64,000 bases of DNA from positions 1-64,000 of IMG/VR virus record IMGVR_UViG_3300044645_002359; one strand, written 5' to 3'. Position 1 is the first letter of the stretch, and each line of letters opens with the position of its first letter. Made by a program: the position numbers and the translations under genes. The notes beneath the pieces are model-generated. The model searched no databases and had not been told where the DNA came from. It saw only the letters and a list, made by a program, of their open reading frames with translations. This document shows positions 3,136 to 63,525 of this stretch, piece after piece.

Positions 3136-3183
3136 AGATGATTCAGCGATTGACTCCTTCGAACTGGAAAAACAATCATCTAG
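3136..3183 (+). ncRNA. Helix-CAGC(A/G)A module, type 1
   Basis: agatgatt-cagcga...aaaac-aatcatct. Confidence 0.65.
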
Positions 3184-4348: not shown

Positions 4349-4478
4349 TTTTTGCTATCGCAAAAACCCAAAGCCATGGGTAACTGATGGCACAAAGGGT
4401 GTGAGTCCCGAGGGGAAAGCAACTGCAATTGTAATACCCGGCCCTTCAAAGTAACTTGCAGGTTTCTTCATAGGGATT

Positions 4479-4548
4479 TGGACGTTAGCTCAACTGGAAG
4501 AGCGCCGCCCACCGGTGGAGGTTGCGGGTTCGAGTCCCGTGCGTTCAA
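4479..4548 (+). tRNA. tRNA-like gene with 4-nt anticodon loop
   Basis: ccgcc-cacc-ggtgg; D and T arms and acceptor intact. Confidence 0.7.
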
Positions 4549-4609
4549 TTTGCCCTCAGGTGAAAGTCTAGGGGTAATAATTACCGGGAGATCAAACCCT
4601 GGTAAAAAA

Positions 4610-4686: not shown

Positions 4687-4707
4687 TTGTTTTGCGATAG
4701 CAAAACT

Positions 4708-4761
4708 AAGATGGTTCAGCAATCTAAAAACTTTCTTTTTGGTAGAAAAACAACCATCTTG
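4708..4761 (+). ncRNA. Helix-CAGCAA module presenting a Gln(TTG)-like anticodon stem-loop
   Basis: aagatggtt-cagcaa...tttct-ttttggt-agaaa...aaccatctt. Confidence 0.75.
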
Positions 4762-4879
4762 TGTAACCTCACAGTTACAAGCTTCGGAATTGACTTAGAA
4801 AGTGGTGCCGTCACCACTCACAGTTTTAACTGCAGAGTTTAGTCAATCTCCTTGATCGTAGCGGGTAAACGGTCTTCAA

Positions 4880-10423: not shown

Positions 10424-11262
10424 ATGCAGAGTTCTTTTTCAGCTAAAGCTATTGAGACAGTTAACCTTCTCCTGGGTAGTTCAGGCACACTTGACTACAC
10501 ACGTTGTGTAAGACCGGATGGTACCGCCTATGGGACTTCAGGTTCCTGTCGCAAGGGTACGCAGCAAAATAAAGCTGAAATTCGGAAGCTAAAAGCCAAG
10601 ATAAAAGAAGCTGAGGGGGTTATAGAGTACCAGCTGAAAGCAGGCGACCCGGCATACGCAAGTCTCTGGGCCAAGCGATTAGAGGAACACAAAAGAAAAC
10701 TAACCGAACTTGAGGGCAATGAGCCGGTCAAGCCAACTACAAAATCAAACGCTCCAGTCTTAACTGGCGTTGAAAAAAGCGCCTTGGTTAACTATATGAC
10801 CGGGGGCTCCATGGAAACTGGGAATTTGCTGGATATAAACTGGAGGCTCAGGGGATTAGGTGAAGGGCTGATCTCATCTACCGAAAACGAACAAATCAAG
10901 AATCTGGACTCAGCCTTGAAGAAACTACCCGGTAATTCGTCTGGGCAGGAGTTTTATCGGGGTGTATCTTTGGAGCCTGAGCAAGCCAGGAATCTCTTAA
11001 CTTCACTGAAAAGTCAAGGGTCGTGGAAAGACCCAGGTTTTCTTCCTACTCGCGAGACAGAGAACAGGCAGAAGAGTTTGCAGGTCAAGGGGAAGTTTCC
11101 GTCATTTTCATTACGCGGTCCAAAAACTTACGAGATGCCGGTAAATACGCTCCCGAAGAATTTTCGGATCAGCAAGAATCAATCCTCCCCCGGAATACCC
11201 CTTTAAGGGTTACAAACATTAAAAAAGACGGCGAGCTAATTGTGGTCCATCTGGCTGATTGA
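10424..11262 (+). CDS. DFTRC-family protein with C-terminal VIP2/Alt-like ADP-ribosyltransferase; single-base frameshift at 11038-11041
   Basis: YRGV...GFSSYS...DQQESILP once 10424..11206 and 11023..11262 are joined. Confidence 0.75.
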
Positions 11263-12324: not shown

Positions 12325-12621
12325 ATGAAAAGCGACCTCACTCCCGTCCACTTCGCTGCTATTGAAGAAACGCTAACCCTGATCGGTAGTGGGTTCGAAC
12401 CACGCAGTCTCATGAACAAACTTCTGTTCGATCTTTTTCCGAACGAAGACCAAAAGTTCTTGGATTACTGGGCTGGTTACAGGTTCGTTCACCTAAAAGG
12501 AACTGCTTTTCTGTCGAGTCGAGAATGGATCCTGACAGACATGGTTCGCGAAGTTCTTCAAGGCACTGCCCAAAAGTGGTTTGAAGATTGGCTTCAAGAG
12601 CACGGTCAGGTAGCTGCCTGA
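12325..12621 (+). CDS. Hypothetical protein (leaderless)
   Basis: ATG 6 nt after -10. Confidence 0.7.
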   Translation: MKSDLTPVHFAAIEETLTLIGSGFEPRSLMNKLLFDLFPNEDQKFLDYWAGYRFVHLKGTAFLSSREWILTDMVREVLQGTAQKWFEDWLQEHGQVAA

Positions 12622-19355: not shown

Positions 19356-19785
19356 GACCAATAGCTCAAGCACTCACTCACTCAGTATATCCTCGGGTGA
19401 CTCTACTGATCTACTAAGCACCCTGCCATTGGACGAAGAGGGAAACGTTGTACTCATCGGAGGTGAATTTGGTTGGGAAATTGAAGACTACACTGACGCC
19501 GACATTAAGGCTAATTACGCGGCTATCTATGTTGAATCTTGGGCAGGAGAGAAAAGTGAGGAATACAGGGAAGTTCTAAATTCGGTGATCAAACAGCAAA
19601 CCGGTTGCTTCAGTGTTGTATATGACCTTAACACGTCGTGGGAGGAAGGTAAAGATCCTTCCTACATTGACCACCAGTCTGTAGAAGGAGGTCAGTTAGA
19701 CTACTTGTTTGAAGACCCCGAACTCTTGCGACAGTTTATCTTTAACCCCCGCAGCGTCCTTCACACCGACAATGACAACTACTGA
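19324..19785 (+). CDS. Conserved FETNSSSTHS-motif protein
   Basis: QIRQAVFETNSSSTHSLSI. Confidence 0.75.
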   Translation: MTTQIRQAVFETNSSSTHSLSISSGDSTDLLSTLPLDEEGNVVLIGGEFGWEIEDYTDADIKANYAAIYVESWAGEKSEEYREVLNSVIKQQTGCFSVVYDLNTSWEEGKDPSYIDHQSVEGGQLDYLFEDPELLRQFIFNPRSVLHTDNDNY

Positions 19786-20674
19786 GTCAATTCTTCACAG
19801 TTACAAAAACGGCAACTGCAAAGTTACCTTATGCTCGAATGGGACTAAGATCCGAGAAACCCTTGACAACAACCCCCCGTGGGCGAGACACCCGGAGAGT
19901 ATTGACGTGAAAATTACAAACTTTTGTGATCTAGCGTGCCCCTACTGTCACGAAAATTCCACCCTTGGGGGGAAGCCTGGGGATCTGAACCGTTTGCTTT
20001 CCATACTGAAGCCCTTGCCAGCAGGAGTGGAGCTGGCCATAGGCGGTGGTAACCCGCTTTCCCATCCTGAACTCATTCCGTTTTTAACCGAAGTACGCGA
20101 CAGGGGGTTAGTATCAAATCTAACTGTGAACGAAAGACACTTGAAACCCTACGAGTTTCTTTTGAGTACCCTAAGTAGGAAAGGCTTGGTCAAAGGAATC
20201 GGAGTTTCTGTCACAGGTACAAACTTACCTCTTCTCAAGCAATTTCTAGAAAACAATCCGCACACTGTGTTCCACGTGATCGCAGGGGTTCATTCCCCGG
20301 AAGTCTTGTCGGACCTTAGCGCTCTGGAAAACAGCAAAACTTTGGTCCTAGGGTACAAAACGTTCGGACGAGGGATTCAGTACTATAGCGACAAAACCAA
20401 ACAGTTGCTAACCGAATGGTATCGAACTATACCATCTTTCCTTGGAAAGATCCACTTGTCGTTCGACAATCTAGCCGTTGAACAGCTTAACATTAGGAGA
20501 TTGTTGACAAACGCAGGGTGGTCCAAGTTTTACATGGGTAATGACGGTACATTCACCATGTACATCGACGCTGTCGAAGGCACCTACGCAAAGACTAGCC
20601 GGAGTATTAAACGAACCCTGTTCAAGGAAATGGACTTAATCACCTACTTCCGGAACCTACCGAAGTTTGCCTAG
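19772..20674 (+). CDS. Radical SAM protein
   Basis: CDLACPYCHE; GGGNP. Confidence 0.9.
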   Translation: MTTTESILHSYKNGNCKVTLCSNGTKIRETLDNNPPWARHPESIDVKITNFCDLACPYCHENSTLGGKPGDLNRLLSILKPLPAGVELAIGGGNPLSHPELIPFLTEVRDRGLVSNLTVNERHLKPYEFLLSTLSRKGLVKGIGVSVTGTNLPLLKQFLENNPHTVFHVIAGVHSPEVLSDLSALENSKTLVLGYKTFGRGIQYYSDKTKQLLTEWYRTIPSFLGKIHLSFDNLAVEQLNIRRLLTNAGWSKFYMGNDGTFTMYIDAVEGTYAKTSRSIKRTLFKEMDLITYFRNLPKFA

Positions 20675-24419: not shown

Positions 24420-24660
24420 GGTCTAAGGGCAAAGCCCTACCATACGGCTCAAAACTGGGTGTAGCTCGGGCAGACGTTGCGGTGGACAAGGGGGCAGTAC
24501 CCTTTAGCTCCACTTTCCCTTTACGGGGCTAATCTAGTTTCGACACCGTGAAAGTGTCACTTGAGTGAAAGCCGCTTGCATAAGCACAAAATAGACGCTA
24601 ACAAAATCGTCAAATTCGAGAGGACTGCCGTAGCCGTTTGAGCTATAGCATTCTGACTCA
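24420..24660 (+). ncRNA. ssrA: Circularly permuted (two-piece) tmRNA, tag (A)NKIVKFERTAVAV
   Basis: T arm and acceptor tagctcca end at 24512, upstream of 5' ggggctaatctagtttcgac at 24525; tag frame 24597-24641. Confidence 0.85.
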
Positions 24661-24664
24661 TTGC

Positions 24665-24683
24665 GGGGGCTTCGGCCCCCCTT
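24665..24683 (+). terminator. GC hairpin with TTCG loop after tmRNA
   Basis: gggggc-ttcg-gccccc-tt. Confidence 0.7.
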
Positions 24684-24701
24684 AAACCAATTAGAAACAA
24701 A

Positions 24702-25094
24702 ATGTTGCAAATTACCTACGAGTCAGAACTAGACTCTGACTACAGGAAAGAACTTGATTCTTGCACAAGCGTTCAAGATTTGAAAGCCTTGATTGACAAG
24801 TACAAGGCAGTCTCCCCCGACTTAAAGGATGTTGTAATTGAGAGCGATGCCGATTACAATGAGTTCAAGAAAGGCTTAGCCGTGGAACGAACTGGGCAAT
24901 ATGCTGGTGACGAATGGTGTGAAAGATTTGGCTCTTTGGCCCTTCCTGTCTACATGCTTTACGCTTCACTTTTAGCCGGAGAGTATGGGGCACCTTGGGG
25001 AGTTGCTTACTTTAGAATGTGCGCGGAAGGGGCTGTCCCAGGTGTAGACCCTGAGCTTGCGAAACAAGAAATTTTCTCATTTCTGCCCAGTTAA
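24702..25094 (+). CDS. Hypothetical protein
   Basis: ORF track. Confidence 0.7.
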   Translation: MLQITYESELDSDYRKELDSCTSVQDLKALIDKYKAVSPDLKDVVIESDADYNEFKKGLAVERTGQYAGDEWCERFGSLALPVYMLYASLLAGEYGAPWGVAYFRMCAEGAVPGVDPELAKQEIFSFLPS

Positions 25095-33439: not shown

Positions 33440-34429
33440 ATGATCGCCCTACCCAACGTCAAGGAAGAAACGGTTATCGAGCCGTTAGTCAAAGAACTGA
33501 TTCAGGTTACCGTTGAAACAGAAGGCGGTTTGGGTTACGTTCATAGGAAAACTTTTCAATTCAGTGCAGGAGAGACTCAAGTTCGCCTCAGTCCTTTGCC
33601 TACAGGAGTCAGGAAGATTCGAGTTAGGGCGGATATTGAGAGCAGCCAAACTTTGGTAGAACTTCTTCTGACTTTGGATGCTATTAACAATCTAGAGTAC
33701 CAAGGTCCTGTCGGATTAACCCTCCCATACCTTCCTTACAGCCGTCAAGACCGCGCCTGCGCACCTGGCGAGGCTTTTGCCCTTTCTGTTCTTGTAAACT
33801 GCCTCGTCCCGTATCTCGGTGCCGACGACACTATCACAACTTGGGATGTTCACAGCAGTGTGGCACGAACCCTTTTCGATAGTAAATTCCAGGGAGTATT
33901 CTATAATGTCTCCGCAGCGAGTCTCTTGCAGAATTTTGAGCTTGAAAAAGATGTGGTATTCAATCCCTCAACCATTGTCATTGCCCCAGATAAGGGTGCT
34001 GTAGACCGGGCCACAGAAGTTCAAAATGTCCTGGGACTAGAACGGACCGTGTACGCAACCAAAGTTCGCAATCCGGACGACGGCCAGATCCTAAGAACAG
34101 AAGTTCCCGAAGACGTGAATTACCGAGGCAAAAACCTTTTGATTGTAGACGACATTTGTGATGGTGGCCGCACTTTCATCGAACTTGCCAAGGTTTTGCG
34201 AGAATACGAGCCGTCACGTATTGACCTTTATGTGACACATGGGATCTTCTCAAAAGGTTTCAAAGTTTTTGAGGGCTTTATTGACAACATCTACGTAGCC
34301 AACCTGTTGATGGAACTCATTGAGCACCGCGATGGACGAAAGTCGTTCCCATCAGGTTCTGACCTCTGTGAAAATGTGGGATGTTATAGAGAATTTCCGA
34401 GCAACGTGACTTATCTCCGAAACATTTAA
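33440..34429 (+). CDS. prs: PRPP synthetase-like protein (NARP1 Adps-like)
   Basis: FSAGE...PYLPYSRQDR...DVHS...APDKGA...IVDDICDGGRTF. Confidence 0.9.
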   Translation: MIALPNVKEETVIEPLVKELIQVTVETEGGLGYVHRKTFQFSAGETQVRLSPLPTGVRKIRVRADIESSQTLVELLLTLDAINNLEYQGPVGLTLPYLPYSRQDRACAPGEAFALSVLVNCLVPYLGADDTITTWDVHSSVARTLFDSKFQGVFYNVSAASLLQNFELEKDVVFNPSTIVIAPDKGAVDRATEVQNVLGLERTVYATKVRNPDDGQILRTEVPEDVNYRGKNLLIVDDICDGGRTFIELAKVLREYEPSRIDLYVTHGIFSKGFKVFEGFIDNIYVANLLMELIEHRDGRKSFPSGSDLCENVGCYREFPSNVTYLRNI

Positions 34430-34467
34430 CCCTGCTCGACAACCCAAGTCAAACCTCTTAACAAACA

Positions 34468-35970
34468 ATGAAACTCTTCGCCCCTAACCTTACAGACTTC
34501 TACAAGACGGGTCACTACCGCCAGTACCCTGAAAACACGGAGTTCATCTACTCGAACATGACCGCACGGTCGGACCGTCTCGCCAAGATGCTCCCCGACT
34601 ACGACCACAAAGTAGTGGTAGCAGGTATTCTGGGCACAGCAGCTTGGTACCTTCGCGACCTTTGGAACGATACTTTCTTCAGTCAACCTAAAGACCGAGT
34701 ACTTGAAAAGTACCGCAGGCGAATGGACTCGGCTCTCGGACCTGGCGCCGTGAGCACAGCCCACCTGGCCGAACTTCACGACCTCGGTTACCTTCCAATC
34801 CGAGTAAAGGCTCTCCCAGAAGGCACCCGTGTCAATCTGCGCGTCCCCTTCCTCACGGTGGAGAACACACACCCCGACTTCTATTGGGTGACTAACTACA
34901 TTGAAACTGCCCTGTCGGCTGAAGTTTGGAAGCATGTCAACAATGCAACCATCGCCTACGAGTTTCGCCGCCTACTTGACCGATACGCAGATCTAACAGG
35001 GACTGACCGGTCTTTTGTTGACTTCCAGGCGCACGACTTTTCCTTCCGAGGAGTTAGTGGTATTCACGATGCTGCTGCCCACGGGATTGGACACCTGTTC
35101 TCCTTCAAGGGTACGGACAACATCCCGGCAATTGACTTCTTGGAAGATTACTACAACGTTGAAGGCGAATTTATCGCCGGTGGCGTCCCTGCTACCGAAC
35201 ACAGTGTTATGTGCACCGGGGGCCAAGATACTGAGATTGACACCTACAGGCGTCTGATTTCTGAAACTTACCCGACTGGTATTGTTAGCATTGTTAGCGA
35301 CACTTGGGACTACTGGAACGTTCTCACGAACATTGCTGCCCAACTGGAGGAGACGATCCTGAATCGCCAACCGGATGCCCTTGGCCTTGCCAAAGTTGTA
35401 TTCCGCCCTGATAGTGGAGACCCCGAGAGAATCCTTTGCGGCGACCCGGACGCTGAACCCGGCAGTCCAGCCTTCAAAGGCTCTCTGCAGCTCCTCTGGG
35501 ACCTCTTCGGAGGCACCGTAAACGAGCAGGGCTTCCGCGTCCTTAACCCTCGCGTGGGCCTCATCTACGGTGACTCGATCACCCTTCCTAGAGCTCTTTC
35601 CATTCTGGAGAACATGCACAGCAACGGATGGGCCAGCGGTAACGTTGTTTTCGGTGTGGGTTCGTACACTTACCAGTTCCACACTCGCGATACATTCGGC
35701 ATCGCTTTCAAGACGACTTGGACTCAAATCAACGGTCAACCTGTCGAAGTTATGAAAGATCCGATTACCGACCGTGGAACTAAGAAGTCGGCCAAAGGGT
35801 TGCTTCGTGTTGAAGAAGAGAATGGCGAGTACGTTCTCTACGAGCAACAAAGTCGAGATGAAGAGAGTCGAGGAGAACTGCGAACCGTATTTATGAATAG
35901 CCAGGTCTTCGAAAGACCCGACGAGAGTTTGACGAACATTCGCAGTCGTCTTGTCTCGCCAAATTCCTAA
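34468..35970 (+). CDS. nadV: Nicotinamide phosphoribosyltransferase-like protein (NARP1 Namat-like)
   Basis: TDFYKTGH...HDFSFRG...PATEHSVM...VSDTWD...RPDSGDP...KKSAKG. Confidence 0.92.
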   Translation: MKLFAPNLTDFYKTGHYRQYPENTEFIYSNMTARSDRLAKMLPDYDHKVVVAGILGTAAWYLRDLWNDTFFSQPKDRVLEKYRRRMDSALGPGAVSTAHLAELHDLGYLPIRVKALPEGTRVNLRVPFLTVENTHPDFYWVTNYIETALSAEVWKHVNNATIAYEFRRLLDRYADLTGTDRSFVDFQAHDFSFRGVSGIHDAAAHGIGHLFSFKGTDNIPAIDFLEDYYNVEGEFIAGGVPATEHSVMCTGGQDTEIDTYRRLISETYPTGIVSIVSDTWDYWNVLTNIAAQLEETILNRQPDALGLAKVVFRPDSGDPERILCGDPDAEPGSPAFKGSLQLLWDLFGGTVNEQGFRVLNPRVGLIYGDSITLPRALSILENMHSNGWASGNVVFGVGSYTYQFHTRDTFGIAFKTTWTQINGQPVEVMKDPITDRGTKKSAKGLLRVEEENGEYVLYEQQSRDEESRGELRTVFMNSQVFERPDESLTNIRSRLVSPNS

Positions 35971-41082: not shown

Positions 41083-42131
41083 TACTTGACACTTTCACTA
41101 AGCTCATCTAGACTCATGTCCCGAATGTCTCTCTCCCAGATGTATATTACCGTAAACCCGTATTTCTCCGCAACTCCCTTCTTCTCTATATCCCTCTCCC
41201 AAATTTCTTCCACAAGGGTACTACCCCCTCCCGGAAGGTGAATACTGTCCCCAAACGAATAGATTTCGGGGTTAGCGTGCCAATAGTCCCCCTGGACCTC
41301 TATTAGCACTTTGGTCCCCGTAATCAAAAAGTCAAATTGCCTTCTGGCAACAAATCGAGAGAACTGAAATTTCAGACCCGCAAGTTCTAAAGCTTGAGAC
41401 ACCTTTTCTTCAACCTTGTTCATTTTCGTAAAAAACTTACCACTCAAGAAGTCATCATTGACTTGCTTCCAGAATTTCCTTGTAAGCTCTCCTCTTCTTT
41501 CGGAGTACTCCTGCTTTCTTTCCTCGCCCCACCCCCTTCTCGTTTCCCTGAGTTTTTCTGCTATTGAACTCATCTTTTCCAAGGAAAAAGAAGCTCTAGT
41601 CAGAGAAATTGCCTCCGGGTTGGTAACCCTAAGCTTACCATAGCGCTCAAGATGAGTTTCGTTTATCTTTTCTTTGACATCTGAAAGTTGGAAAACATTG
41701 TCCACCCCGTACTTTGATCTAACTGTTTCATTTCTCTTGTGGTAAAATTCAGTTCCCTTACAGAGAACATTATTCACTCCGTACTTTTCTTGAGAAACTT
41801 TCACCATTTTACTTTTCTTTTGATTTGAACCATTAGCTTCTTTAATTTTTCTTACAGGTATCTCAAAGTAGTCCATTAGAAAAGATAGTCTCCTGCCCGG
41901 TAATCCAAAAAGCTCTTTGAAGTCCGGGAAGCTGAACCCCTTAATCAGGTACAAGTGCTTTAGTTTTCTGCCACTCTCTAGTTTCAGCGCCGGGTAGCTA
42001 AGCTTCAAGGTGTTAAACCTGTACTCCTTTTCCGATAAACCAGGCCCCTTAAGACAGGTTTTCAAATGAATCTTCCTTCCACACTCCTTAAGACAAACAA
42101 AGCAAACCAAACTCTTAACTAGAACCCCCAT
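41043..42131 (-). mobile_element. Free-standing Vsr/DUF559-like homing endonuclease, antisense, between the intein halves
   Basis: KYGVNNV/KYGVDNVFQ repeats; FDF...LIEVQGDYWHA...IYIWERDI. Confidence 0.85.
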
Positions 42132-43008
42132 GAAAATCTCCAAAATAGAAAAGATAGAAAGTGACTCCCACCTATATGATATACAAACTTTTACCCGTAA
42201 CTTCTACGCTGAGGGGGTATTGGTACACAATAGCTTAATCAAGCTCTTCAACTACAACGGGGACTGGATTGTTTCGACGTCCGGATCGGTGGCAGCAGCT
42301 TCGGAAGTTGGTTCCACTGGGCGTTCTTTTGAGGAACTGTTCTGGCTTGTCTTTGACGAAGTTGGTTATTCTCGGGAATGGCTCGATGAGGGTCTGTGCT
42401 ATATCTTCGAACTGTGCCACCGCGATAACCGCATCGTTGTGGATTATGCAGAGCCTCAGTTACCGCTGCTGGCTGTGCGCGACCGTTCCAACGATTTCGA
42501 AGAGCTTGAACTTGTTTCGTTCTGCAACCTGTTCGGGTTCAAAGCTGCCAAGTCGTATGACCTGGGGAGCATGGAAGGCTTGATGGCAGTCGTGAACGAT
42601 CGTGGCGCCGACCACGAAGGGTTTATCCTGTTTGACGGTGTTGGTCGTGCGAAAGCAAAGTCCGATGTGTACTGCCAAATGCACCGTGTTCGCGGAAACG
42701 GCGATCCGGACTTCTCCGAGCTTTTTCTGAACGACGATTTGGAAGAATTCCTACTGCACTTCCCTGAGTACCGTGAGGGCTTCGACGTTCACCTGCGTTC
42801 CATCGACATAATGGAAGTTGCTGTGGAAGAGATCATGGGGGTTTACAACCACTTGAATCAGAAGGACTTTGCTCAAGTTGTAATTGCTAAGGAGAGGGAA
42901 CTGTCGGGGGCTTGTTTTGCGATTCGCTCCGGTAAAGTTGGCTCCTTCGGTCAGTGGCTGGAAGGCTTGTCTCCGAAGAAGCTGGATGCCCTGCTGGGTA
43001 TCAACTGA
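42130..43008 (+). CDS. C-half of split intein (34 aa) plus RNA ligase 1 C-extein
   Basis: MKISKIEK...LYDIQ...NFYAEGVLVHN|SLIKLF..GDW.VSTSG...YIFEL...HEGFILFD...AKAKS. Confidence 0.9.
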   Translation: MKISKIEKIESDSHLYDIQTFTRNFYAEGVLVHNSLIKLFNYNGDWIVSTSGSVAAASEVGSTGRSFEELFWLVFDEVGYSREWLDEGLCYIFELCHRDNRIVVDYAEPQLPLLAVRDRSNDFEELELVSFCNLFGFKAAKSYDLGSMEGLMAVVNDRGADHEGFILFDGVGRAKAKSDVYCQMHRVRGNGDPDFSELFLNDDLEEFLLHFPEYREGFDVHLRSIDIMEVAVEEIMGVYNHLNQKDFAQVVIAKERELSGACFAIRSGKVGSFGQWLEGLSPKKLDALLGIN

Positions 43009-44759: not shown

Positions 44760-44975
44760 CGTCCTGTCAGAACTCTCTACTGAAGACAAGAATCTTTACA
44801 CGGCACTTTTGAGTGTCGTCACAGTTGTAATTCTGCTCCTGCTGGGAATGACCTCTTGTGCTATCACGGAAAGTCGAGAGCGGATTAATAGAACAATCCT
44901 AGATTGCAGAAGTACAGCTGTTAATAGAGTCGAGTCAACAGATACACTCGACTTGATTTGTGGGAAACTGCCTCA

Positions 44976-45716
44976 GTGACACACTCCCGATATGCCATTA
45001 TCGGAGACGTTCACTCTCAAGCATTCCCCTTGAAGAATGCCCTAGACTACTGTTACGATAACAACTTAACTCCAATTATTCTTGGCGACCTTTTTGATTC
45101 GCAGTGTCAGGTTTCAGAGTCAGTTTCTGTTTACAACCTTGTAAGAAAGTCTCAGGGCGATCTTGGAGCGATTGTACTTCGCTCGAACCACCAGCACCTC
45201 CTTGAGAAACTTATCAAAAAAGAAGAGGTTTCCCTTAAAAAAGACTTGTGTAAAACAGTCAGAGAGTTTCAAGAGGCAGGAATTTGTCTAACTGAGGTAG
45301 GGCAGTGGCTTGAAACTTTCCCTTACGTTTTCGCCTTCCGAGACTCTCGAGGACAAGAGTACAGAGTCGCTCACGCGGAAATTCCTGCTTCAGTAAAGGT
45401 ACCGAACTTCGATCAAACCTGGATGTATCTTCACCCCACGGAACAAGAGCTGCGATGCCTGCTTTGGGGCGCCGATTACTCCCTGCCCAACCGTGACCGG
45501 TTCTGGTGGCTCGGGAAGCCCGAGAGGGACTGGGTAGCCGTCGCGGGCCATTACCACAAGGTTGTCAACGATGGCCGCTCTCTCGTCCTCGACGCTGGGT
45601 GTGGAGGGAAGACCCGCGCCTGGTACGACAAGCGTCCCCCTGCGTTACTTCTCTACGACGTTGAGGTCCAAAGCCTGATTGAATTCCCGGCTTTTGATAA
45701 CTCGGTCGTAGGGTAA
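44976..45716 (+). CDS. Calcineurin-like metallophosphoesterase (paralog A)
   Basis: GDVHSQ...LGDLFD...SNHQ...AH...GHYH. Confidence 0.85.
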   Translation: MTHSRYAIIGDVHSQAFPLKNALDYCYDNNLTPIILGDLFDSQCQVSESVSVYNLVRKSQGDLGAIVLRSNHQHLLEKLIKKEEVSLKKDLCKTVREFQEAGICLTEVGQWLETFPYVFAFRDSRGQEYRVAHAEIPASVKVPNFDQTWMYLHPTEQELRCLLWGADYSLPNRDRFWWLGKPERDWVAVAGHYHKVVNDGRSLVLDAGCGGKTRAWYDKRPPALLLYDVEVQSLIEFPAFDNSVVG

Positions 45717-48780: not shown

Positions 48781-48815
48781 TATTGCATGAACATGACACG
48801 AGCCTAATCTACAAA

Positions 48816-49940
48816 ATGGCAAACATCGAACGCAAACTTGCATCTGTCCGCAAAGTAACGGACATTCGCCCCATCCCCGACGCTGACGCCATCGAATGCG
48901 CCATTGTAGGTGGTGGTTGGCCCGTGGTAGTGAAAAAGGGAGAATTTCAGGTTGGCGACCTCGCCATCTACTTCGAGATTGATTCCTGGATTCCTCACGA
49001 ACTTGCCCCATTCCTCTCCAAGGGGAAGAAACCAAGGGAGTATAATGGAGTGAAGGGGGAGAGGCTGAAAACTGTCAGGCTCCGTGGTCAAGTCTCCCAG
49101 GGTCTCCTGCTCCGCTTCTCGGACATCTCTCCAAGCTTCTACGTTGTCTCGCTAGCCGAACCTTACGGGGGGAGGGAATTTCTCCGAGTTGATCAGTGCG
49201 TGTGGGAGGAAGGTGAGGACTTCACTCTAGAGTTCGGAATTCAGAAATGGGAAGCTCCTGTCCCAGCTTGCTTGGCTGGTCAAGTTCGCGGGAACTTTCC
49301 TAGCTTCCTCGTGAAGACGGACCAGGAACGTTGTCAGAATGTTGTGGAGGAAATCTTTGAGCGCCATAAGGGTGAAACCTACGAAGTTACTATCAAACTT
49401 GATGGGTCTTCCTGCACGGTCTACGTCAAGGACGGGGAAGTTGGGGTGTGCAGCCGTAACCTTGACCTCAAGGAAACCGAAGGCAATAGTTTCTGGAAGG
49501 CTGCTAGGGATCAGGGCATTATCGATGCTATGCTTGCATACAATGGGAAGACTGGTCACAGTATTGCCTTGCAGTCGGAAACCCTTGGAGAAGGCATCCA
49601 GGGCAACCAGGAAGGAATCAAGGGACAACGCCTATTCCTGTTTGACATCTTCGATATCGACAGCCAAACTTACATGAAGCCAGGGGCCAGAATGAACCTC
49701 TTGGACAAGTACCTAGTTCCATTAGGCGCTGATTTAACCCATACCCCTGTCCTACACCCCGCAATGTGTGTAACTGATAGTTCCGCCAACCTTGATGAGC
49801 TACTAGCGTACGCCGATGGCCCGTCCATGAACCCCAAAGTCAAACGCGAAGGCTTAGTATTCAAGTCCAATGACTCTGAGTTTTCCTTCAAGGCCATTAG
49901 TAATGAATGGCTCTTATCCAAGGGAAAGAAGGGTGGCTGA
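48816..49940 (+). CDS. RNA ligase, Rnl2/DRB0094 family
   Basis: RKLASVRKV...YFEIDS...SQGL...KTDQER...KLDGSS...EGLVFK...FKAISNEWL. Confidence 0.92.
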   Translation: MANIERKLASVRKVTDIRPIPDADAIECAIVGGGWPVVVKKGEFQVGDLAIYFEIDSWIPHELAPFLSKGKKPREYNGVKGERLKTVRLRGQVSQGLLLRFSDISPSFYVVSLAEPYGGREFLRVDQCVWEEGEDFTLEFGIQKWEAPVPACLAGQVRGNFPSFLVKTDQERCQNVVEEIFERHKGETYEVTIKLDGSSCTVYVKDGEVGVCSRNLDLKETEGNSFWKAARDQGIIDAMLAYNGKTGHSIALQSETLGEGIQGNQEGIKGQRLFLFDIFDIDSQTYMKPGARMNLLDKYLVPLGADLTHTPVLHPAMCVTDSSANLDELLAYADGPSMNPKVKREGLVFKSNDSEFSFKAISNEWLLSKGKKGG

Positions 49941-53973: not shown

Positions 53974-54792
53974 ATGTCTGTCACTAAAGTTGCAATCGGC
54001 TCTGGCGCCATTCTCCTTTCTCTGGTTCTAGCCGCAGGCCAATTTACCACAATTAGCACGGGTGAAAATGGTCTTTACATTGGCTTCGATGGCCAAGTCA
54101 AAAACGAAGTGCTGACCCCAGGCATCAAGTACGACGGGTTGGGCTCCATCAAGGTGTTTAACACTCGTAAGATCACTGTCACAGCGAACGACCTTCGTCC
54201 CAAGACTAAAGATAACACCATCATGAAAGAGATGGACGTCACGGTTACTTACAGCATTAATCCTAACTCCCTTTACGAGTTTTTCACCAACTACGACCTT
54301 ACCAACCACGGTATTGCCGAAAACGGTCAGCTTCAACTGATGTCAAGTTACATCTCTCGTCTTATTACATCCGCTGTTAACCAGTCGGTAGACGAATTCC
54401 CTGCTTTGGCTGTTAACAGTAGTCTTGAGCAAATTCAAGACACAATTAAGGCCAACCTTTCGGAAGCTTTACAGAAAAATGGTCTTGAAGGTAAGATCAC
54501 CGTGGATTCAATCATAGTTGGCAAGGCAGACCTTCCTGACGACCTGGTTGCCTCGGTTAACCGTGTGGTTGCCGCTCAGTCGGGTTTGAAAGAACAACAA
54601 GTTAGGACAGAAACTGCCCAATTGAAGGCGGAAGAGAACAAAGCTCTGGCTTCTACCGTTACCGCACAATCGTTGGAATACCAGCGAAATGAAATCCTGA
54701 AGGCTGCCTTTGCCAACGGATCCATTCAGAAGATGGTTATCATCAACGGTGCCAAGATGGACTTTCTGCCCGGTGGCTTGACCGATAAGTAA
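53974..54792 (+). CDS. SPFH/band 7 (prohibitin-like) membrane protein
   Basis: N-terminal TM segment, SPFH fold, C-terminal coiled coil. Confidence 0.8.
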   Translation: MSVTKVAIGSGAILLSLVLAAGQFTTISTGENGLYIGFDGQVKNEVLTPGIKYDGLGSIKVFNTRKITVTANDLRPKTKDNTIMKEMDVTVTYSINPNSLYEFFTNYDLTNHGIAENGQLQLMSSYISRLITSAVNQSVDEFPALAVNSSLEQIQDTIKANLSEALQKNGLEGKITVDSIIVGKADLPDDLVASVNRVVAAQSGLKEQQVRTETAQLKAEENKALASTVTAQSLEYQRNEILKAAFANGSIQKMVIINGAKMDFLPGGLTDK

Positions 54793-56477: not shown

Positions 56478-56567
56478 TTGCCGAGAGTTTACCGTCTACC
56501 CCTGGCCCTATGTTAGGGCTGTCGGTGTCCACGCCGCCATTTCCCTAGGGTAACCCCGGGAACAAAG

Positions 56568-56593
56568 TTGATACAGCCATCACTTGTATCCAA
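56568..56593 (+). promoter_or_regulatory. CAGCCA hairpin in the leader of the TROVE-like gene
   Basis: ttgataca-gccatcact-tgtatc(c)aa. Confidence 0.55.
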
Positions 56594-56624
56594 AACACAA
56601 AAACAATCAACTTGAGAGAAGAAA

Positions 56625-58118
56625 ATGACAACCTTTTTGAACGCACTCGAAAACGAATTCAATACTACGACCACAGCCAACGGCGCAAAAGCCTATAAGT
56701 CCACAGGTTCCAAGAACCTGGACCTTTTCGGGAAGATTGCAGCCTGCCGCAACGACGTTAGCGAAGCAACTCGCCTATTCAACCTTGCTTATGCTGAAGA
56801 CCCTGAGACCGCAACCAGAATCCTGTTCTGGGCACGTGACATTCGCGGTGGCCAGGGTGAGCGTAAGATCTTCCGAGAAGTTTTCAAGGAGCTGGTTCGC
56901 AATGATGCTACAATCGGCGCGAAACTCATTAGTTTGATCCCGCAGTATGGACGCTGGGATGATGTGGTAGCCCTTGAAGGCACCCTAGTTTGGAATGTTG
57001 CACTCGAGGCAATCAAGGCACAGCTGAACGCTGACTTGAACACCGAAGTTGGAAACTCCGTGTCATTGCTTGCGAAATGGCTCCCTTCCATTAACGCCTC
57101 TAGCAAGGAGTCTAAGAGGATTGGCCGCAAGATTGCCGAGGCAATGGGTTGGAATGAGCGTCAATATCGCAAGGCTTTGACTGCTCTTAGGACACAAATC
57201 AAAATTGTCGAACAGGCAATGTGTGCCCGTGAGTGGGATGCCATTGATTATAGCAAGTTGCCTTCTCGTGCAGGCTTCATGTATCGGAAAGCTTTCGCAA
57301 ATCGTGATGGCGACCGTTACCAGTCCTACCTGGATGCAGTTAAAAAAGGTGAAGCAAAGATCAATGCCGGTACTTTGTATCCGTATGACATCGTTGAGAA
57401 GTGTCTCTACAACCAAGAATCCAATGATACTCTAGAAGTAATGTGGAAAGCCCTGCCGAACTTCATGGAGGGCAAGGAATTGAATGGGCTTGTTGTTGCC
57501 GATGTTAGCCGTTCTATGTCAGGCCGTCCAATGGCAGTATCCATCTCTCTGGCGATGTATATCGCAGAGCGTAATACCGGCATCTGGAAGGACAAGTTCC
57601 TAACATTCTCAGGGAATCCTTCTCTACAGACTGTGACTGGCAGTAGCCTTTCAAACAAGGTTCGCAACCTTAGCCGAGCAGATTGGGGCGGTAACACTGA
57701 TATTCAGAAGACGTTTGACCTTATTCTGGATACTGCAGTTCGGAACAACATTCCAGAGTCAGACATGCCCCGCAAACTGATTATTGTCTCAGACATGCAG
57801 TTTGATAACTGTGTTATCATGGGAGGTAATTACTCCGGTCGTATGAGTTATGGCGGAGCCCGAGTCACCAACTACGAAGCAATCCGCATCAAGTACGCTC
57901 AAGCTGGCTACAGCTTGCCCGAAGTTATCTTCTGGAATGTCGATTCCTCAGATAACGTCCCGATGAAGGCACATGATTCCGGTACCGCTCTCGTTAGCGG
58001 TTGCTCTCCGTCAATCCTGACCGCAGTTCTTACCAGAAACGCAATCACCCCATTGTCCCTAATGAGAGATGCTGTTTATACTGAAAGGTATGACGCTGTG
58101 GGTGCGGTCTTTAACTGA
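56625..58118 (+). CDS. TROVE/Ro60-related DUF2828 + vWA protein
   Basis: T.NGA.AY.STG...LDLF...RDIRGG.GER...YGRWDD...AKWLPS...ADVSRSM...SDMQFD...FWNV...SG.SP. Confidence 0.85.
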   Translation: MTTFLNALENEFNTTTTANGAKAYKSTGSKNLDLFGKIAACRNDVSEATRLFNLAYAEDPETATRILFWARDIRGGQGERKIFREVFKELVRNDATIGAKLISLIPQYGRWDDVVALEGTLVWNVALEAIKAQLNADLNTEVGNSVSLLAKWLPSINASSKESKRIGRKIAEAMGWNERQYRKALTALRTQIKIVEQAMCAREWDAIDYSKLPSRAGFMYRKAFANRDGDRYQSYLDAVKKGEAKINAGTLYPYDIVEKCLYNQESNDTLEVMWKALPNFMEGKELNGLVVADVSRSMSGRPMAVSISLAMYIAERNTGIWKDKFLTFSGNPSLQTVTGSSLSNKVRNLSRADWGGNTDIQKTFDLILDTAVRNNIPESDMPRKLIIVSDMQFDNCVIMGGNYSGRMSYGGARVTNYEAIRIKYAQAGYSLPEVIFWNVDSSDNVPMKAHDSGTALVSGCSPSILTAVLTRNAITPLSLMRDAVYTERYDAVGAVFN

Positions 58119-58305
58119 TGGAAAGGACCCTAGTAACTACGTTAATGTCAGCCCAGGGTCTTCTCCTTGGGTTGAAGTTAACAGGGCAAATAGCCTGGTC
58201 GTGGCTGTGGGTGTTTAGTCCTATTTTAGTTGTAAGCTGTGGGTTAGGGTTACTTATCCTCCTATTGATCCTAGGGTTGATGGGCGGTAAGTAAGGCAGA
58301 CCCGT

Positions 58306-58359
58306 AAGATGGTTCAGCAATCAAACCTTTCTTTGTAACAGAAAAAACCAACCATCTTG
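58306..58359 (+). ncRNA. Helix-CAGCAA module presenting a Tyr(GTA)-like anticodon stem-loop
   Basis: aagatggtt-cagcaa...tttct-ttgtaac-agaaa...aaccatctt. Confidence 0.75.
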
Positions 58360-58403
58360 TTTAAATAAAGTCAACTTCCCTGGTAGTTCACCGGGGCAAC
58401 AAT

Positions 58404-58520
58404 GGGGAATGGTGCAATGGCAGCACACGTAATTAACGGTTACCTTGGATAAGGTACAGACAGCAATTACAAAAATTCCATTCCACGGACGTGACGGAGG
58501 TTCGATTCCTTCTTCCCCAT
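58404..58520 (+). ncRNA. tRNA body (Gly TCC-like) with CAGCAA hairpin inserted in the anticodon stem
   Basis: D and T arms; gtacctt-ggat-aaggtac-aga-cagcaa; cc-attccac-gg. Confidence 0.7.
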
Positions 58521-58719
58521 TTTCGAAAATCAACTCAAGCAATCAACAATGAAGTCATCTCATCTTTACACTTTGATCGGTGTTGTAGCACTGTGGTTTG
58601 TATTGACCTTGACACTAATTCTCAAGGAAAACTATCAAGGTGCTATCGGAACCGGATTGGCCCTTTTCTTTTCCTCGGTTGGTACGATAGGTGTTGTTGC
58701 CCATTTTGAAGGGAACAGG

Positions 58720-58782
58720 CGGTAAACCGCCCCATGTGGTTCGGTTTGCACCCTTGTTTTCGCACCGCGAAAACGCTATGAT
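58720..58782 (+). promoter_or_regulatory. Class I repeated promoter
   Basis: cggtaaaccg; TTGTTT-17-TATGAT; ATG 58789. Confidence 0.85.
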
Positions 58783-58788
58783 TATAAC

Positions 58789-59232
58789 ATGAACCAAGAG
58801 ACCTACTTCCCTTGCTCTCGCCAGATCGAGATCCTCGATCAGCACGAGAACGCCAACGAGATTCCTCCGTACGTTAATTATCTGGTGCGGTTTGAGAACC
58901 CCTACGGTGGAGAAAGTGTCGGAGTGGTAATTGAGCCCAACTCCGAAGGCGTCGAAGAAGTTTACACTAACCAGAAATTTCCGGTAGCTTCCATGCTTCC
59001 TGGCCAATCGGAAAATGACGAGCTTCTGCTCAACCTTTTCCGCACCTGGGTGTTGACTCCGCCGATGTTTACACAAGTCACTGTTCGTCAACAGACGGAC
59101 AAGTTCTACACCTTGAGTTTTCACAATCAGCACTGGAATTTCCATGCCCGCTCTCGGAACCTCTCGTACATCAAAGGGAAGATTCGGAACCTAGCAAAGT
59201 CCCGTGATGTGAAGGTCACCTGGGAGGTTTGA
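58789..59232 (+). CDS. Hypothetical protein (leaderless)
   Basis: ATG 6 nt after -10. Confidence 0.7.
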   Translation: MNQETYFPCSRQIEILDQHENANEIPPYVNYLVRFENPYGGESVGVVIEPNSEGVEEVYTNQKFPVASMLPGQSENDELLLNLFRTWVLTPPMFTQVTVRQQTDKFYTLSFHNQHWNFHARSRNLSYIKGKIRNLAKSRDVKVTWEV

Positions 59233-59272
59233 CTCCAAGTTTACCTCCCTCCTTGAGGCCTATGCTGTTTTT

Positions 59273-59363
59273 GAGACGAGTCAGCGTTAACTAAAGGATA
59301 ATGCGAGACAGTTAAAAACTTTTTCAGCTAGGTGGTTCAAATCCACTGTCAACACTCATCTTG
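59273..59363 (+). ncRNA. Y-RNA-like module: terminal helix, CAGCG and internal T arm
   Basis: gagacgagt-cagcg...gtgg-ttcaaat-ccac...actcatctt; starts at predicted +1 of the TATGCT promoter. Confidence 0.65.
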
Positions 59364-59377
59364 TTCACAAATAAAAC

Positions 59378-59501
59378 CGAAGAGTAGACAAGTGGTTAGG
59401 CAGCGGTAATGCAAAAAAGATTATCTAGTTTAGGTGATTCAGCAATACCCTAATACGCTAAAAGGAACCGCCATACGCAAGTTCGAATCTTGCCTCTTCG
59501 A
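59378..59501 (+). ncRNA. tRNA body with CAGCAA hairpin inside the anticodon loop
   Basis: cgaagag/ctcttcg; gcggt..accgc encloses gattatcta-gtt-taggtgatt-cagcaa. Confidence 0.7.
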
Positions 59502-59521
59502 TTGTTTTTCTTTGAAAACGT

Positions 59522-59570
59522 AGATAGTTCAGCAATTCACCCTAACTCAATAAGGAAAACAACTATCTTG
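59522..59570 (+). ncRNA. Helix-CAGCAA module, type 1
   Basis: agatagtt-cagcaa...cct-aactcaata-agg...aactatct. Confidence 0.7.
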
Positions 59571-59609
59571 CTGAATCTAGTTTCAACAAACTATTTGCGA
59601 AGCAAATAA

Positions 59610-59727
59610 GGGACCGTAGCTCAACTGGTAGAGCGCTAAATAAAAGTTATCTTGTACAAGATACGTCAGCAATTAAAAAATACCTCGTTTAAAGGAGTGG
59701 TTGCAGGTTCGAGTCCTGCCGGTCCCA
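59610..59727 (+). ncRNA. tRNA body (Lys TTT-like) with CAGCAA hairpin between the D and anticodon arms
   Basis: gggaccg/cggtccc; tatcttg-tac-aagata-cgt-cagcaa; cct-cgtttaa-agg. Confidence 0.7.
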
Positions 59728-59970
59728 TTTACCCCAAGTCTAGCCATGAAAATTTCACGGTTGTTACCCTGCTGGCCTGCACAGTGCTAACTCTCTCGCC
59801 AACGTGGGCAAAATACCAGAGTCTAATCACTGGCGCAAACCCGGAGGAAGTTCAAGAAAATGCCTTCAAGAAAAGTATGAGCTATCCGGTGGGCTCTCTC
59901 AAGTGTAGCCAGCGTTGTTCTCAGTGGTGGCATCACGACTGACTTAGCATCAAGAGTAAAAAAGTTTAAC

Positions 59971-60339
59971 ATGACAAATAGTACAACCCCGTTTCACTTG
60001 ACCCAAAGTCACCTGAAACTGCTGAGGAGAATGCACGTAGGTTGGAGCGTCTGTGAGTTTGGTGCTCCCGAGATAGACCCAAAGAGACCATACGGCAACA
60101 GTTGGGTGCTTGGCGACATACACGAGATTTTGACAGGGGAAGACATAGACGAACTAACTGAATCTCAGAAGGAGGAATACAGGCAGTTACACGAAGAAAC
60201 TCAAACAGCCCTCCAGATTATCCTTTCCATGGGCAAGTTTGAGGAAGGCTTGTACATACGGACTAACCCGTACTCTTCCACCTGGGTACCGTACCCACTC
60301 GCGGGCAGAATCGCGGAAAAATCACAAAACGCTACTTAG
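59971..60339 (+). CDS. Conserved phage hypothetical protein
   Basis: GAPEIDPKRPYGNS....DIHEIL. Confidence 0.75.
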   Translation: MTNSTTPFHLTQSHLKLLRRMHVGWSVCEFGAPEIDPKRPYGNSWVLGDIHEILTGEDIDELTESQKEEYRQLHEETQTALQIILSMGKFEEGLYIRTNPYSSTWVPYPLAGRIAEKSQNAT

Positions 60340-62030: not shown

Positions 62031-62858
62031 ATGCCCGCATTTGCAGTCACAGACAACCTCAACTGGGAAGTTGAGCAGCGTCCCGTTTTCTTCCCTGATT
62101 CCCAGGGTAATCCCGTCCGCTTCGAGGACCGGGTTGCTATTGTTCGCAGCGACAATGAGTTCCCCCTGGGTATCGTGTCCGAGGATTACGAAACGGTCCA
62201 GAACAAAGACCTGCTTGGTCTCATCAACCCTATGGTTGAAGAAGGTCTGCTTACCATTGAAAACATGGGTTATCTGGCCCACGGCGCCAAAGTGTTCGCC
62301 CAGGCTGAGATTAACCAAGAGTTCCGCGTGATCGGCGAAGATTACAAAGCTTTCATCACCCTGCTGAACGGTCACGTGGGTAATGCCTCTGTGGCTATCG
62401 GTCCGGTGGCCACCCGCGTTATTTGCGGTAACACTTTCTCCATGGCATACTCTAACATTGGAGAGAAGTTCCGCCACTCTCTGGGTGTGAATGAGCGCAT
62501 TCTTGAGAGCACCGCAGTGCTTGACTTTGTGAATAGCGCCATGGAAAAGTATTCCAAAAACGTTGAAACCATCGCCTCGGCAACTTGCACTTCCGCTCAA
62601 TTCCGCACCTTCCTGGAAGCAACCTATAAGAAGGAAGCGGATAAGATGCGCAATGTGAACGTTCTCAACGATCTGTTCTACAACGGCGCTGGCAACGAAG
62701 GTCGTACCTTCTACGACGCCATGAATGCGGTCACGGACTTCAGCTCCAATCGCAGCCGGAAGACTTCCTCTGGCCGCTTCGGCTACGCCAACTTCGGTCA
62801 AGGTGCCTCCATCAACCAACGGGCGATGCGAGTGGCCCTGGAGATGGCGGCGGTCTGA
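62031..62858 (+). CDS. DUF932 family protein
   Basis: LGIVS.DY..VQN...LLNGH.G...RVIC.NT. Confidence 0.85.
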   Translation: MPAFAVTDNLNWEVEQRPVFFPDSQGNPVRFEDRVAIVRSDNEFPLGIVSEDYETVQNKDLLGLINPMVEEGLLTIENMGYLAHGAKVFAQAEINQEFRVIGEDYKAFITLLNGHVGNASVAIGPVATRVICGNTFSMAYSNIGEKFRHSLGVNERILESTAVLDFVNSAMEKYSKNVETIASATCTSAQFRTFLEATYKKEADKMRNVNVLNDLFYNGAGNEGRTFYDAMNAVTDFSSNRSRKTSSGRFGYANFGQGASINQRAMRVALEMAAV

Positions 62859-62925: not shown

Positions 62926-63525
62926 ATGAATATCGAAACGCTAGAAAAGTTCTGTTCGTCTTGGAGAACAAACTTTGAGAAGCCCTTCGTCTACGATAAA
63001 AAAACTTATTCTACTGATGGGCACATTCTCCTCCGTATCGACAGGATGCTAGAAGGTGTTGAAGAGAATCCTGACTTTCCTTATGACAGGATTAAGGAAA
63101 ACTTCGACGGATCTTTTTTGAACCCTGCTCCCTTGGCCGACTATCGCACTGAGGAGAAGACAGAGATCTGTCCCGAGTGTAATGGAAAAGGAATTGTGTC
63201 GACTTGCCCTGAATGTGCAGGAAGTAGGGAGGTAGAATGGGACTCCGGATGGAACTACTACACTGCTGAATGCCAATCTTGTGAAGGTACAGGGACCCTA
63301 GCTGACGGAGATTCGGGGGATGAATGCGATAACTGCGATGGAAAGGGAGTAATTGCGGTGAGAGAGACAGTACAGATTGGAAACTCAACTTTCACTAATC
63401 TCCTAATCAACAAACTTCTAAACAATTTGCCCGAAGACCTTGAGATCTTCCCGAGCACCGAGAAGCGAAAGCCAGCACTCCTGCGTTGGAATGGTGGTGA
63501 CGGTCTTCTTATGCCCCTCCTCTGA
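62926..63525 (+). CDS. Protein with DnaJ-type CxxCxGxG zinc-finger repeats
   Basis: CPECNGKG, CPECAGS, CQSCEGTG, CDNCDGKG. Confidence 0.8.
   Translation: MNIETLEKFCSSWRTNFEKPFVYDKKTYSTDGHILLRIDRMLEGVEENPDFPYDRIKENFDGSFLNPAPLADYRTEEKTEICPECNGKGIVSTCPECAGSREVEWDSGWNYYTAECQSCEGTGTLADGDSGDECDNCDGKGVIAVRETVQIGNSTFTNLLINKLLNNLPEDLEIFPSTEKRKPALLRWNGGDGLLMPLL

Follow-up and report, generated by a model that had tools for sequence, protein, structure and literature searches.

A 91-nt phage element beside a Ro60-like gene: probably Y-RNA-like, not a YrlA

Sequence comparisons across very different phages reveal a conserved, strand-specific and putative RNA structural module that is physically linked to a gene for a protein with a predicted Ro60 fold. 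A 91-nt element located at one of these loci is probably a Y-RNA-like partner of the Ro60-like protein and not a YrlA, the family to which the earlier note had likened it. The element itself is a real, non-coding, tRNA-flavoured fold within a cluster of small RNAs, and it rises above chance because it is conserved in three copies and sits in a cluster of related RNAs. What has been observed directly are sequence features, conservation, strand bias, genomic linkage and, as a prediction, the fold of the protein.

The DNA analysed (hereafter the window) comprises the first 64 kb of an IMG/VR virus record of 201,260 bp with an estimated completeness of 71%, and it includes 35 tRNA genes between positions 18 and 17552. 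According to the Ro60-like protein, the closest named relatives are the Synechococcus phages B3 and B23 (58% identity), and 13 relatives at 77-91% identity are found in IMG/VR, two of which are complete genomes of 277-279 kb. Among the sequences referred to below by a handle, L003 is a viral contig with a copy of the 91-nt element, L060 and L089 are metagenome contigs, and L012 is the complete relative of 279 kb.

The Ro60-like protein and the RNAs around its gene

The features on which the argument is built are the following, R1 being a covariance model made from 13 hairpin-type units:

3133-3184, + strand: hairpin-type unit within the tRNA array (R1, 56.3 bits)
4706-4762, + strand: hairpin-type unit within the tRNA array (R1, 57.6 bits)
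56563-56615, + strand: hairpin-type unit with the variant CAGCCAT, ending 10 nt before the ATG of the Ro60-like gene (R1, 52.7 bits)
56625-58118, + strand: gene of the Ro60-like protein, 497 aa (Pfam DUF2828 and DUF7788; predicted fold of Ro60/Rsr)
58304-58360, + strand: hairpin-type unit with an 11-bp end-to-end helix, CAGCAAT and an A-rich loop (R1, 62.2 bits, E 1e-10)
58403-58520, + strand: tRNA-like RNA tlA, in which the module (a closed hairpin, then CAGCAAT) replaces the anticodon arm (Rfam tRNA, 41.5 bits, 58-nt insertion)
59272-59363, + strand: the 91-nt element, a cloverleaf-like candidate RNA (sequence, MFE fold, homologs in L003, L089 and L060)
59378-59501, + strand: tRNA-like RNA tlB, with an embedded module, a perfect 7-bp acceptor stem, a T arm and a weak D arm (conservation, RNAalifold)
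59519-59571, + strand: hairpin-type unit (R1, 57.8 bits)
59610-59727, + strand: tRNA-like RNA tlC, with an embedded module (Rfam tRNA, 50.1 bits, 58-nt insertion)

The protein encoded at 56625-58118 matches the Pfam families DUF7788 (3.6e-47) and DUF2828 (2.2e-36), with a weak vWA signal, as well as PHROG 850, described as 'RNA-binding protein'. No match to Pfam TROVE was found anywhere in the 201-kb record, and a sequence search against PDB chains returned nothing, so that the link of this protein to Ro60 comes from fold comparison only. An AlphaFold2 model was obtained from a 10-sequence alignment with moderate confidence (pLDDT 74.5), and its 13 best Foldseek matches are all Ro60, Rsr or TROVE chains, aligned over more than 500 columns with E values of 1e-6 to 5e-3 and TM scores of 0.31-0.43; bare vWA domains rank below them. 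The modelled fold thereby matches Ro60/Rsr over its full length, with a helical-repeat N-terminal part of the ring domain type followed by a vWA domain that holds DxSxS at residues 293-297. D293, S295 and S297 are invariant and would fit the DxSxS motif of a MIDAS. The TROVE protein to which the earlier note had referred is therefore a real neighbour as far as the predicted fold goes, yet it belongs to a separate sequence family, of the DUF2828 type and without Pfam TROVE.

Homologs of this protein are present in at least 702 phage records, with hosts that include Escherichia, Salmonella, Mycobacterium, Vibrio, Listeria, Staphylococcus, Campylobacter, Enterococcus, Bacillus and others, and those of mycobacteriophages are annotated as 'Ro-like RNA binding protein'. 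The groups that hold DUF2828-type proteins are Felixounavirus, myoviruses of Listeria, Staphylococcus and Enterococcus, vibriophages, cluster-type mycobacteriophages and jumbo cyanophages. In Listeria phage LP-125, an annotated RtcB-like tRNA-splicing ligase (L144 6855-8066) is encoded 1.3 kb downstream of the DUF2828 gene, so that in a second phage, too, the Ro-like gene is associated with RNA repair.

The module shared by the RNAs around the gene is a helix with an AGA/UCU core, one strand of which is flanked by CAGCAAY and the other by an A-rich tract. The window contains 19 copies of CAGCAAT versus 6.8 expected, and none of 100 shuffles has as many; wherever the case is clear, the word comes directly after one strand of an AGA/UCU-core helix. 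Eight clear module RNAs have been found around the Ro60-like gene and the tRNA array, five of them plain hairpins and three with tRNA-like bodies. In the plain hairpins the two ends pair, and the loop starts with a CAGCAAY-type motif and ends A-rich. Searching the 201-kb record with R1 returns exactly these five units, all on the + strand and either beside the Ro60-like gene or in the tRNA array. The same model finds 5-6 copies in each of the two complete relatives and phage B3, on the strand of the Ro-like gene, which form two clusters in the complete relatives and, in B3, are all five located at the Ro-like gene. The unit at 56563-56615 recurs at this position in all close relatives, and that at 58304-58360 is conserved in L003, L012 and L013.

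In tlA, tlB and tlC the connectivity is reversed with respect to the hairpin units: a short loop caps the helix, and the chain re-enters the tRNA body through CAGCAAU. tlB, for which the Rfam tRNA model gives no match, is conserved at 87-93% in 13 relatives. An alignment of 16 units of this embedded form, drawn from the phage analysed, its relatives, B3 and a phage at 39% identity, yields an RNAalifold consensus with acceptor stem, D stem, module hairpin and T arm, in which 13 of the 19 pairs, module hairpin included, show compensatory changes. In phage B3 this form is annotated as 'tRNA-Pseudo-GCA'.

Two readings of tlA-C were discarded. Removing the insert restores no anticodon stem-loop, and the module corresponds to the hairpin units in circularly permuted form, which speaks against both intron-bearing tRNAs and tRNA genes into which a mobile hairpin has been inserted. 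A motif acting at the DNA level, such as an operator or a promoter, was rejected because of the strict strand bias, the G.U pairs in the helix and the compensatory changes; the G.U pairs and the permuted connectivity argue for a structural module at the RNA level. None of the families of Rfam 15 matches the module units.

The module in other phages

The helix and CAGCAAY are also encoded beside the DUF2828 gene, among tRNA genes and on the gene strand, in phages PK-3 (Bacillus), Douge (a mycobacteriophage), skuden (a Felixounavirus of E. coli), LP-125 (Listeria) and R11Z (Vibrio), as well as in the IMG/VR phages L016 and L018. The typical signature across phages is a UAGAC-type helix followed by three bases and then CAGCAAY. 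Since MAFFT misaligns the 3' strands when loop lengths are unequal, a descriptor scan with strand and shuffle controls was used instead of a general covariance model. With this permissive descriptor, 51 stem and CAGCAAY units were counted on the gene strand at 12 diverse DUF2828 loci, versus 11 on the opposite strand and about 10 in shuffles.

In skuden and Douge, the loop of one unit holds a V hairpin, a T arm, an acceptor-like stem-loop (AS) and a D arm, in this order, and V, T, AS and D parts can also be recognized by inspection in a unit of PK-3. The Douge unit gives a sub-threshold match to the Rfam YrlA model on exactly the T-AS-D domain (32.4 bits, with a cut-off of 69; E 0.002). On account of this YrlA layout in the units of the three phages, the family is Y-RNA-like in architecture, with a motif and a protein of its own. 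The skuden candidates are unannotated stem and CAGCAAY units located in the gaps between annotated tRNAs. For Felixounavirus there are three such units, at L143 5708-5790, 5875-5955 and 6357-6500.

In many phages the start codon of the Ro-like gene is directly preceded by one or more module units (window 56563-56615; L001 3871-3991; L016 3843-3980; L144 3660-3900; L145 3960-4000), a position which suggests that the Ro-like protein could bind its own leader. A full-text search of the literature returned no description of RNAs linked to DUF2828 proteins.

The 91-nt element and its possible explanations

The 91-nt element lies 1,155 nt downstream of the Ro60-like gene and on the same strand, between the unit at 58304-58360 and tlA on one side and tlB, the unit at 59519-59571 and tlC on the other, all of them on the + strand, and is clustered in this way with the module RNAs. 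The earlier note had placed it at the head of a possible polycistronic transcript, and it is indeed the first of four small RNAs that follow one another on this strand (59273-59727). No ORF of at least 50 aa overlaps it on either strand.

The layout described in that note, with an end-to-end helix, a short conserved motif after it and a T arm within, is indeed present. The terminal helix gagacgagt (59273-59281)/actcatctt (59354-59362) forms 8 of its 9 pairs, with one C.A mismatch; in the register conserved among relatives (59272-59280/59355-59363) it has nine positions, with one C.A and two G.U. CAGCG follows the helix, within CAGCGTT at 59282-59288. The T arm gtgg-ttcaaat-ccac is likewise found, and comprises five pairs (GGTGG, 59331-59335; CCACT, 59343-59347) around TTCAAAT, a canonical 7-nt T loop. 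The stem gacag (59307-59311)/ctgtc (59346-59350), also proposed previously, exists in the letters of the window, but it shares base 59346 with the T stem and cannot be formed in L003, L089 or L060. Other hairpins are located at 59284-59289/59299-59304 and 59305-59313/59317-59325, and the MFE fold is a four-arm cloverleaf consisting of the terminal helix, these two hairpins, a 5-nt variable region and the T arm, with a 3-nt loop on the arm at the anticodon position. The T stem is separated from the 3' strand by a spacer of only 7 nt (3 nt in L003), so that the element has neither an AS nor a D arm. Its fold energy is ordinary (MFE -19.2 kcal/mol, z -1.5), with 15 of 200 shuffles as stable.

The element had also been thought to begin at a predicted transcription start. 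TATGCT (59261-59266) does precede it by 7 nt, but the predicted start did not stand: this site has no usable -35, and the hexamer is CCAAAC in relatives. A sigma-70 scan called nothing near 59261 (4 sites in 3.8 kb, with 4.0 expected), and no promoter or terminator was called at the ends of the element.

Only four records hold the 91-nt element, which is absent from 10 of the 13 close relatives. Its three copies, in L003 (7238-7327, 77%), L089 (1062-1155) and L060 (88% for the latter two), are 77-88% identical to it. No alignment could be made of the flanking spacer or of the upstream ORF. When viral contigs were scanned with exact patterns for further homologs, only the contig of L003 was returned, and a loose metagenome scan gave at least 120 mostly chance matches, among which only L060 and L089 are real. 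When the fold was checked on the four copies, 88.8% of the cells were paired, versus 36-44% in slid controls. A compensatory signal is seen as a double change in the T stem and as a series of A-U, G-C and G.U at one pair of the terminal helix in three lineages; with only two double changes in four sequences, a number matched by 81 of 500 shuffles, this covariation is not significant. The copies in L089 and L060 show a C.C mismatch in the T stem and are chimeras of the window and L003 forms. As the upstream ORF is unrelated in L003 and L089 but the downstream RNAs are shared with the window, the element belongs with the RNA cluster.

Two further observations concern related sequences. In L012 (5600-5690), everything between the 5' portion of the tlA homolog and the T loop in the homolog of the 91-nt element has been deleted and the two are fused, which is evidence for recombination between the T loops of these RNAs. 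In the window, a second anticodon-less tRNA-like element is located at 2345-2438, between two tRNA-Ser genes; its terminal helix of 9 bp encloses two hairpins, a variable arm that resembles a T arm, and a true T arm. The true T arm is nearly identical to that of the 91-nt element, and the 5' ends are similar. The fold of this second element has an MFE of -34.5 kcal/mol (z -2.9), and the tRNA model does not match it at E<=5.

The relationship of the 91-nt element to the module family is based on its helix, which has the AGA/UCU core (UGAGACGAG / CUCAUCUUG) and is followed by U and then CAGC, in keeping with the definition of the family helix (an AGA/UCU core, with the 5' strand ending 0-4 nt before the motif). 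R1 aligns the helix and CAGC to the consensus; owing to the heavy penalty on the 67-nt loop insertion, the score is no more than 9.2 bits (E 0.27, 3.2 kb searched with filters off). With a PWM that is free of loop length, the element ranks 7th among 127,926 window positions, behind the five training units and tlB, and is the best non-training two-sided match in the window besides tlB, by a small margin (21.0 bits vs 18.9 for the next background position). It departs from CAGC-N-A-Y, with CAGCGTT here and in L089 and L060 and CAGCATT in L003, that is, with U instead of the A that is invariant at motif position 6 in 19 of 19 aligned module units. Since the predicted fold pairs GCGUU with UAAUGC further downstream, the motif may simply be stem. 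The element can be regarded, with uncertainty, as a marginal, lineage-restricted and divergent member of the family that has kept the helix and CAGC and carries a T arm only.

A true ortholog of YrlA (Rfam RF02553), as the earlier note had suggested, seems extremely improbable. YrlA RNAs follow the order motif-V-T-AS-D, and they were recognized by their position within 4 kb of the Ro60 gene and on the same strand (PMC4201824). The 91-nt element shares with them the end-to-end helix and the resemblance of its T arm, and it lies within 4 kb of the Ro-like gene and on its strand, as in the positional criterion of Chen et al. (PMC4201824), although the neighbouring protein has no Pfam TROVE match. 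The Infernal search that had been proposed as a check gave no RF02553 match to 59273-59363 at E<=10 in 57800-60300, and nothing above the cut-off in the 201-kb record, where six sub-threshold matches of at most 26.9 bits (gathering score, 69 bits) all span tandem tRNAs and none falls at 59273-59363. The motif GNCGAAN0-1G is absent, the element having GACGAG in its 5' strand (five of six positions), not conserved in L003 or L089, and then CAGCGTT; the AS and D arms are missing too. At the level of the family model, these comparisons argue that the ortholog reading is refuted.

The element was also discarded as a tRNA, as it shows no RF00005 match at E<=10, is absent from the ARAGORN list and lacks an anticodon stem-loop. 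A different explanation is that it represents an anticodon-less tRNA-like RNA or a decaying relic with no relation to binding by the Ro-like protein, which we consider possible but unlikely. On the same doubtful footing, its cloverleaf could have originated by recombination among tRNA or tRNA-like genes of the phage, and would now serve as a tRNA mimic or decoy or be drifting to loss. The four-arm MFE fold with its 5-nt variable region and canonical T loop agrees with such an origin, as do the almost identical T arm and similar 5' end of the element at 2345-2438, the recombination seen in relatives (the tlA/T-loop fusion of L012 and the chimera of L089, with its broken T-stem pair), the patchy occurrence among relatives and the loss of the invariant A of the module. 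However, neither the tRNA model nor ARAGORN matches the element, the 7 nt (3 in L003) before the 3' strand break the stacking of acceptor and T stems, the terminal helix and CAGC are closer to those of the hairpin units than chance gives, and the element always travels with the module-bearing cluster.

It is quite improbable that the element acts in cis, as a structured 5' leader or processing signal of the downstream tRNA-like transcript or as the 3' end of the upstream mRNA, or that its fold is due to chance. The unremarkable fold energy (z -1.5), the spacing of only 14 nt to tlB and the lack of a called promoter or terminator at either end are in favour of such a reading; nevertheless, the element is conserved in L003 and L089 next to a non-homologous upstream ORF, it keeps its T loop and helices, and it remains 77-88% identical between spacers that cannot be aligned. 

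The explanation that we favour is that of a Y-RNA-like partner, in which the element would be a small non-coding RNA of a phage family whose members act as functional Y RNAs of the DUF2828-type Ro60-like protein; in this full form we consider it about as probable as not.

A mechanism can be outlined for the Y-RNA-like reading. The ring-shaped Ro60-like protein would bind the module through its helix and the flanking single strands, as in the case of Ro60 and Y RNA, and the variable part, which may be absent or consist of a T arm, a T-AS-D domain or an entire tRNA-like body, would recruit or mimic substrates of tRNA-handling enzymes or nucleases. In the 91-nt element it would be the T arm that engages tRNA-recognising enzymes or nucleases. 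The module RNAs could in this manner tie the Ro60-like protein to the tRNA and RNA-repair programme of the phage or to counter-defence, and the copy in the leader of the Ro60-like gene could provide feedback control. For the 91-nt element, transcription, RNA ends, protein binding and function are what we infer from this analogy.

Known Ro60 systems and the genomic setting

Ro60/Y-RNA particles are present in animals, in about 5% of bacteria and in a few phages. To our knowledge, the RNA partners of Ro60 have been found so far only beside TROVE-annotated proteins. The module RNAs resemble YrlA and YrlB (RF02553, PMC4201824) in that they adjoin, on the same strand, the gene of a Ro60-type ring protein, in their modular construction, which combines an end helix and its short conserved motif with a second, variable module imitating parts of tRNA, and in the presence of several different RNAs per locus. 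The DUF2828-linked RNAs of skuden, Douge and PK-3 share with YrlA even the order motif-V-T-AS-D. In contrast, the motif is CAGCAAY here and GNCGAAN0-1G in YrlA, and the partner is a DUF2828/DUF7788 protein here and a Pfam TROVE protein there. Contrary to YrlA, the 91-nt element carries a T arm only, and the tRNA-like versions of this lineage are unpermuted, with both RNA ends at the acceptor stem and the helix of protein-binding type closed by a loop at the anticodon position. The Rfam YrlA model detects none of the units of the window.

Thermus phage phiLo (PMC12135203) offers another comparison, since it encodes a Ro60-type protein with at least two adjacent small RNAs (Yrl1 and Yrl2), and its Ro60 chains (PDB 9KOP and 9L5Y) are the best Foldseek matches of the 56625-58118 protein, with about 14-18% identity in the structural alignment. 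The phiLo protein, however, is a recognisable Ro60 homolog, its RNAs carry a CGAA motif in a bulge (PMC12135203), and tRNA-embedded forms are absent from that phage.

In the Felixounavirus Bas63, the Ro60-like protein gp130 is encoded directly upstream of a tRNA array and counters the Ppl defence; its authors guessed that some 'tRNA genes' were Y RNAs, naming no RNA (bioRxiv 10.1101/2024.10.10.617714). In skuden, the gene in the equivalent position encodes a 38%-identical homolog of the 56625-58118 protein, and genus and synteny point to skuden_69 as the putative ortholog of gp130.

The 91-nt element resembles what is called as tRNA or 'pseudo-tRNA' in its canonical T loop, its cloverleaf-like fold and its location among tRNA genes, and it differs from a tRNA (RF00005) in the lack of an anticodon stem-loop and in the extra nucleotides between the T stem and the 3' strand.

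As Chen et al. searched only genomes with TROVE-annotated proteins (PMC4201824), no Rfam 15 family matches the module and no description of DUF2828-linked RNAs was found in the literature searched, the module family is rated as new within the Ro/Y-RNA kind, the 91-nt element being an uncertain member of it. As far as found in the same literature, the unpermuted chimera, a tRNA-like body with the module at the place of the anticodon arm, has not been reported earlier. We tentatively propose, while judging it slightly less probable than its opposite, that the DUF2828/DUF7788 proteins (at least 702 phage records) constitute a second Ro60-like lineage with its own class of Y-type RNAs, defined by the helix and CAGCAAY, with interchangeable topologies and autoregulation through the leader, and that these RNAs are the missing partners of the anti-Ppl factor of Felixounavirus. 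The topologies would be the bare hairpin, the YrlA-like permuted T-AS-D form, the unpermuted tRNA chimera and, in the 91-nt element, the T-arm-only form.

The DUF2828-type Ro-like protein is far commoner in phages than the TROVE-linked type, and the signature of a stem and CAGCAAY on the same strand, beside the gene or in the tRNA array, provides candidates that can be searched for in tractable phages. If true, the proposal would account for many 'pseudo-tRNA' calls, as well as for many gaps that have no annotation in the tRNA arrays of phages. The two topologies, circular permutations of each other, amount to a natural experiment on the part of a Y RNA that is recognised.

The window also encodes PRPP synthetase and NAMPT (NAD salvage), an Rnl1-like RNA ligase, a metallophosphoesterase and a second RNA ligase with an OB-fold domain (33440-35970, 42130-43008, 44958-45716 and 48783-49940). 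RNA-repair and NAD-replenishment genes of this sort are typical of counter-defence, and the five together are in keeping with RNA repair or counter-defence as the setting. Genes located amid the tRNAs at 10424-11206 and 19709-20674 include a weak match to an ADP-ribosyltransferase domain (20.3 bits, below the cut-off of 23.4) and a radical SAM protein.

In the tRNA array, ARAGORN predicts tRNAs with anticodons of four bases (ttcg) and of two bases, as well as a tRNA-Ser (act), at 2165-2237, 4478-4549 and 363-433, respectively; these odd anticodons may correspond to frameshift-type tRNAs, to aberrant ones or to mispredictions. Orphan T-arm hairpins, with a 5-bp stem and a TTCRANY loop, occur outside the called tRNAs at 241-257, 1016-1032, 1480-1496, 1513-1529 and 12389-12405, the first of which is covered by a weak match to the tRNA model over 195-265 (22.5 bits). 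A permuted, two-piece tmRNA gene is located at 24423-24732 (Rfam tmRNA_permuted, 73 bits), for which ARAGORN predicts the tag peptide ANKIVKFERTAVAV. The RNA cluster itself is flanked by genes for an SPFH/Band 7 protein (53974-54792), a DUF932 protein (62031-62858) and a protein with a DnaJ-type CXXCXGXG zinc finger (62926-63525).
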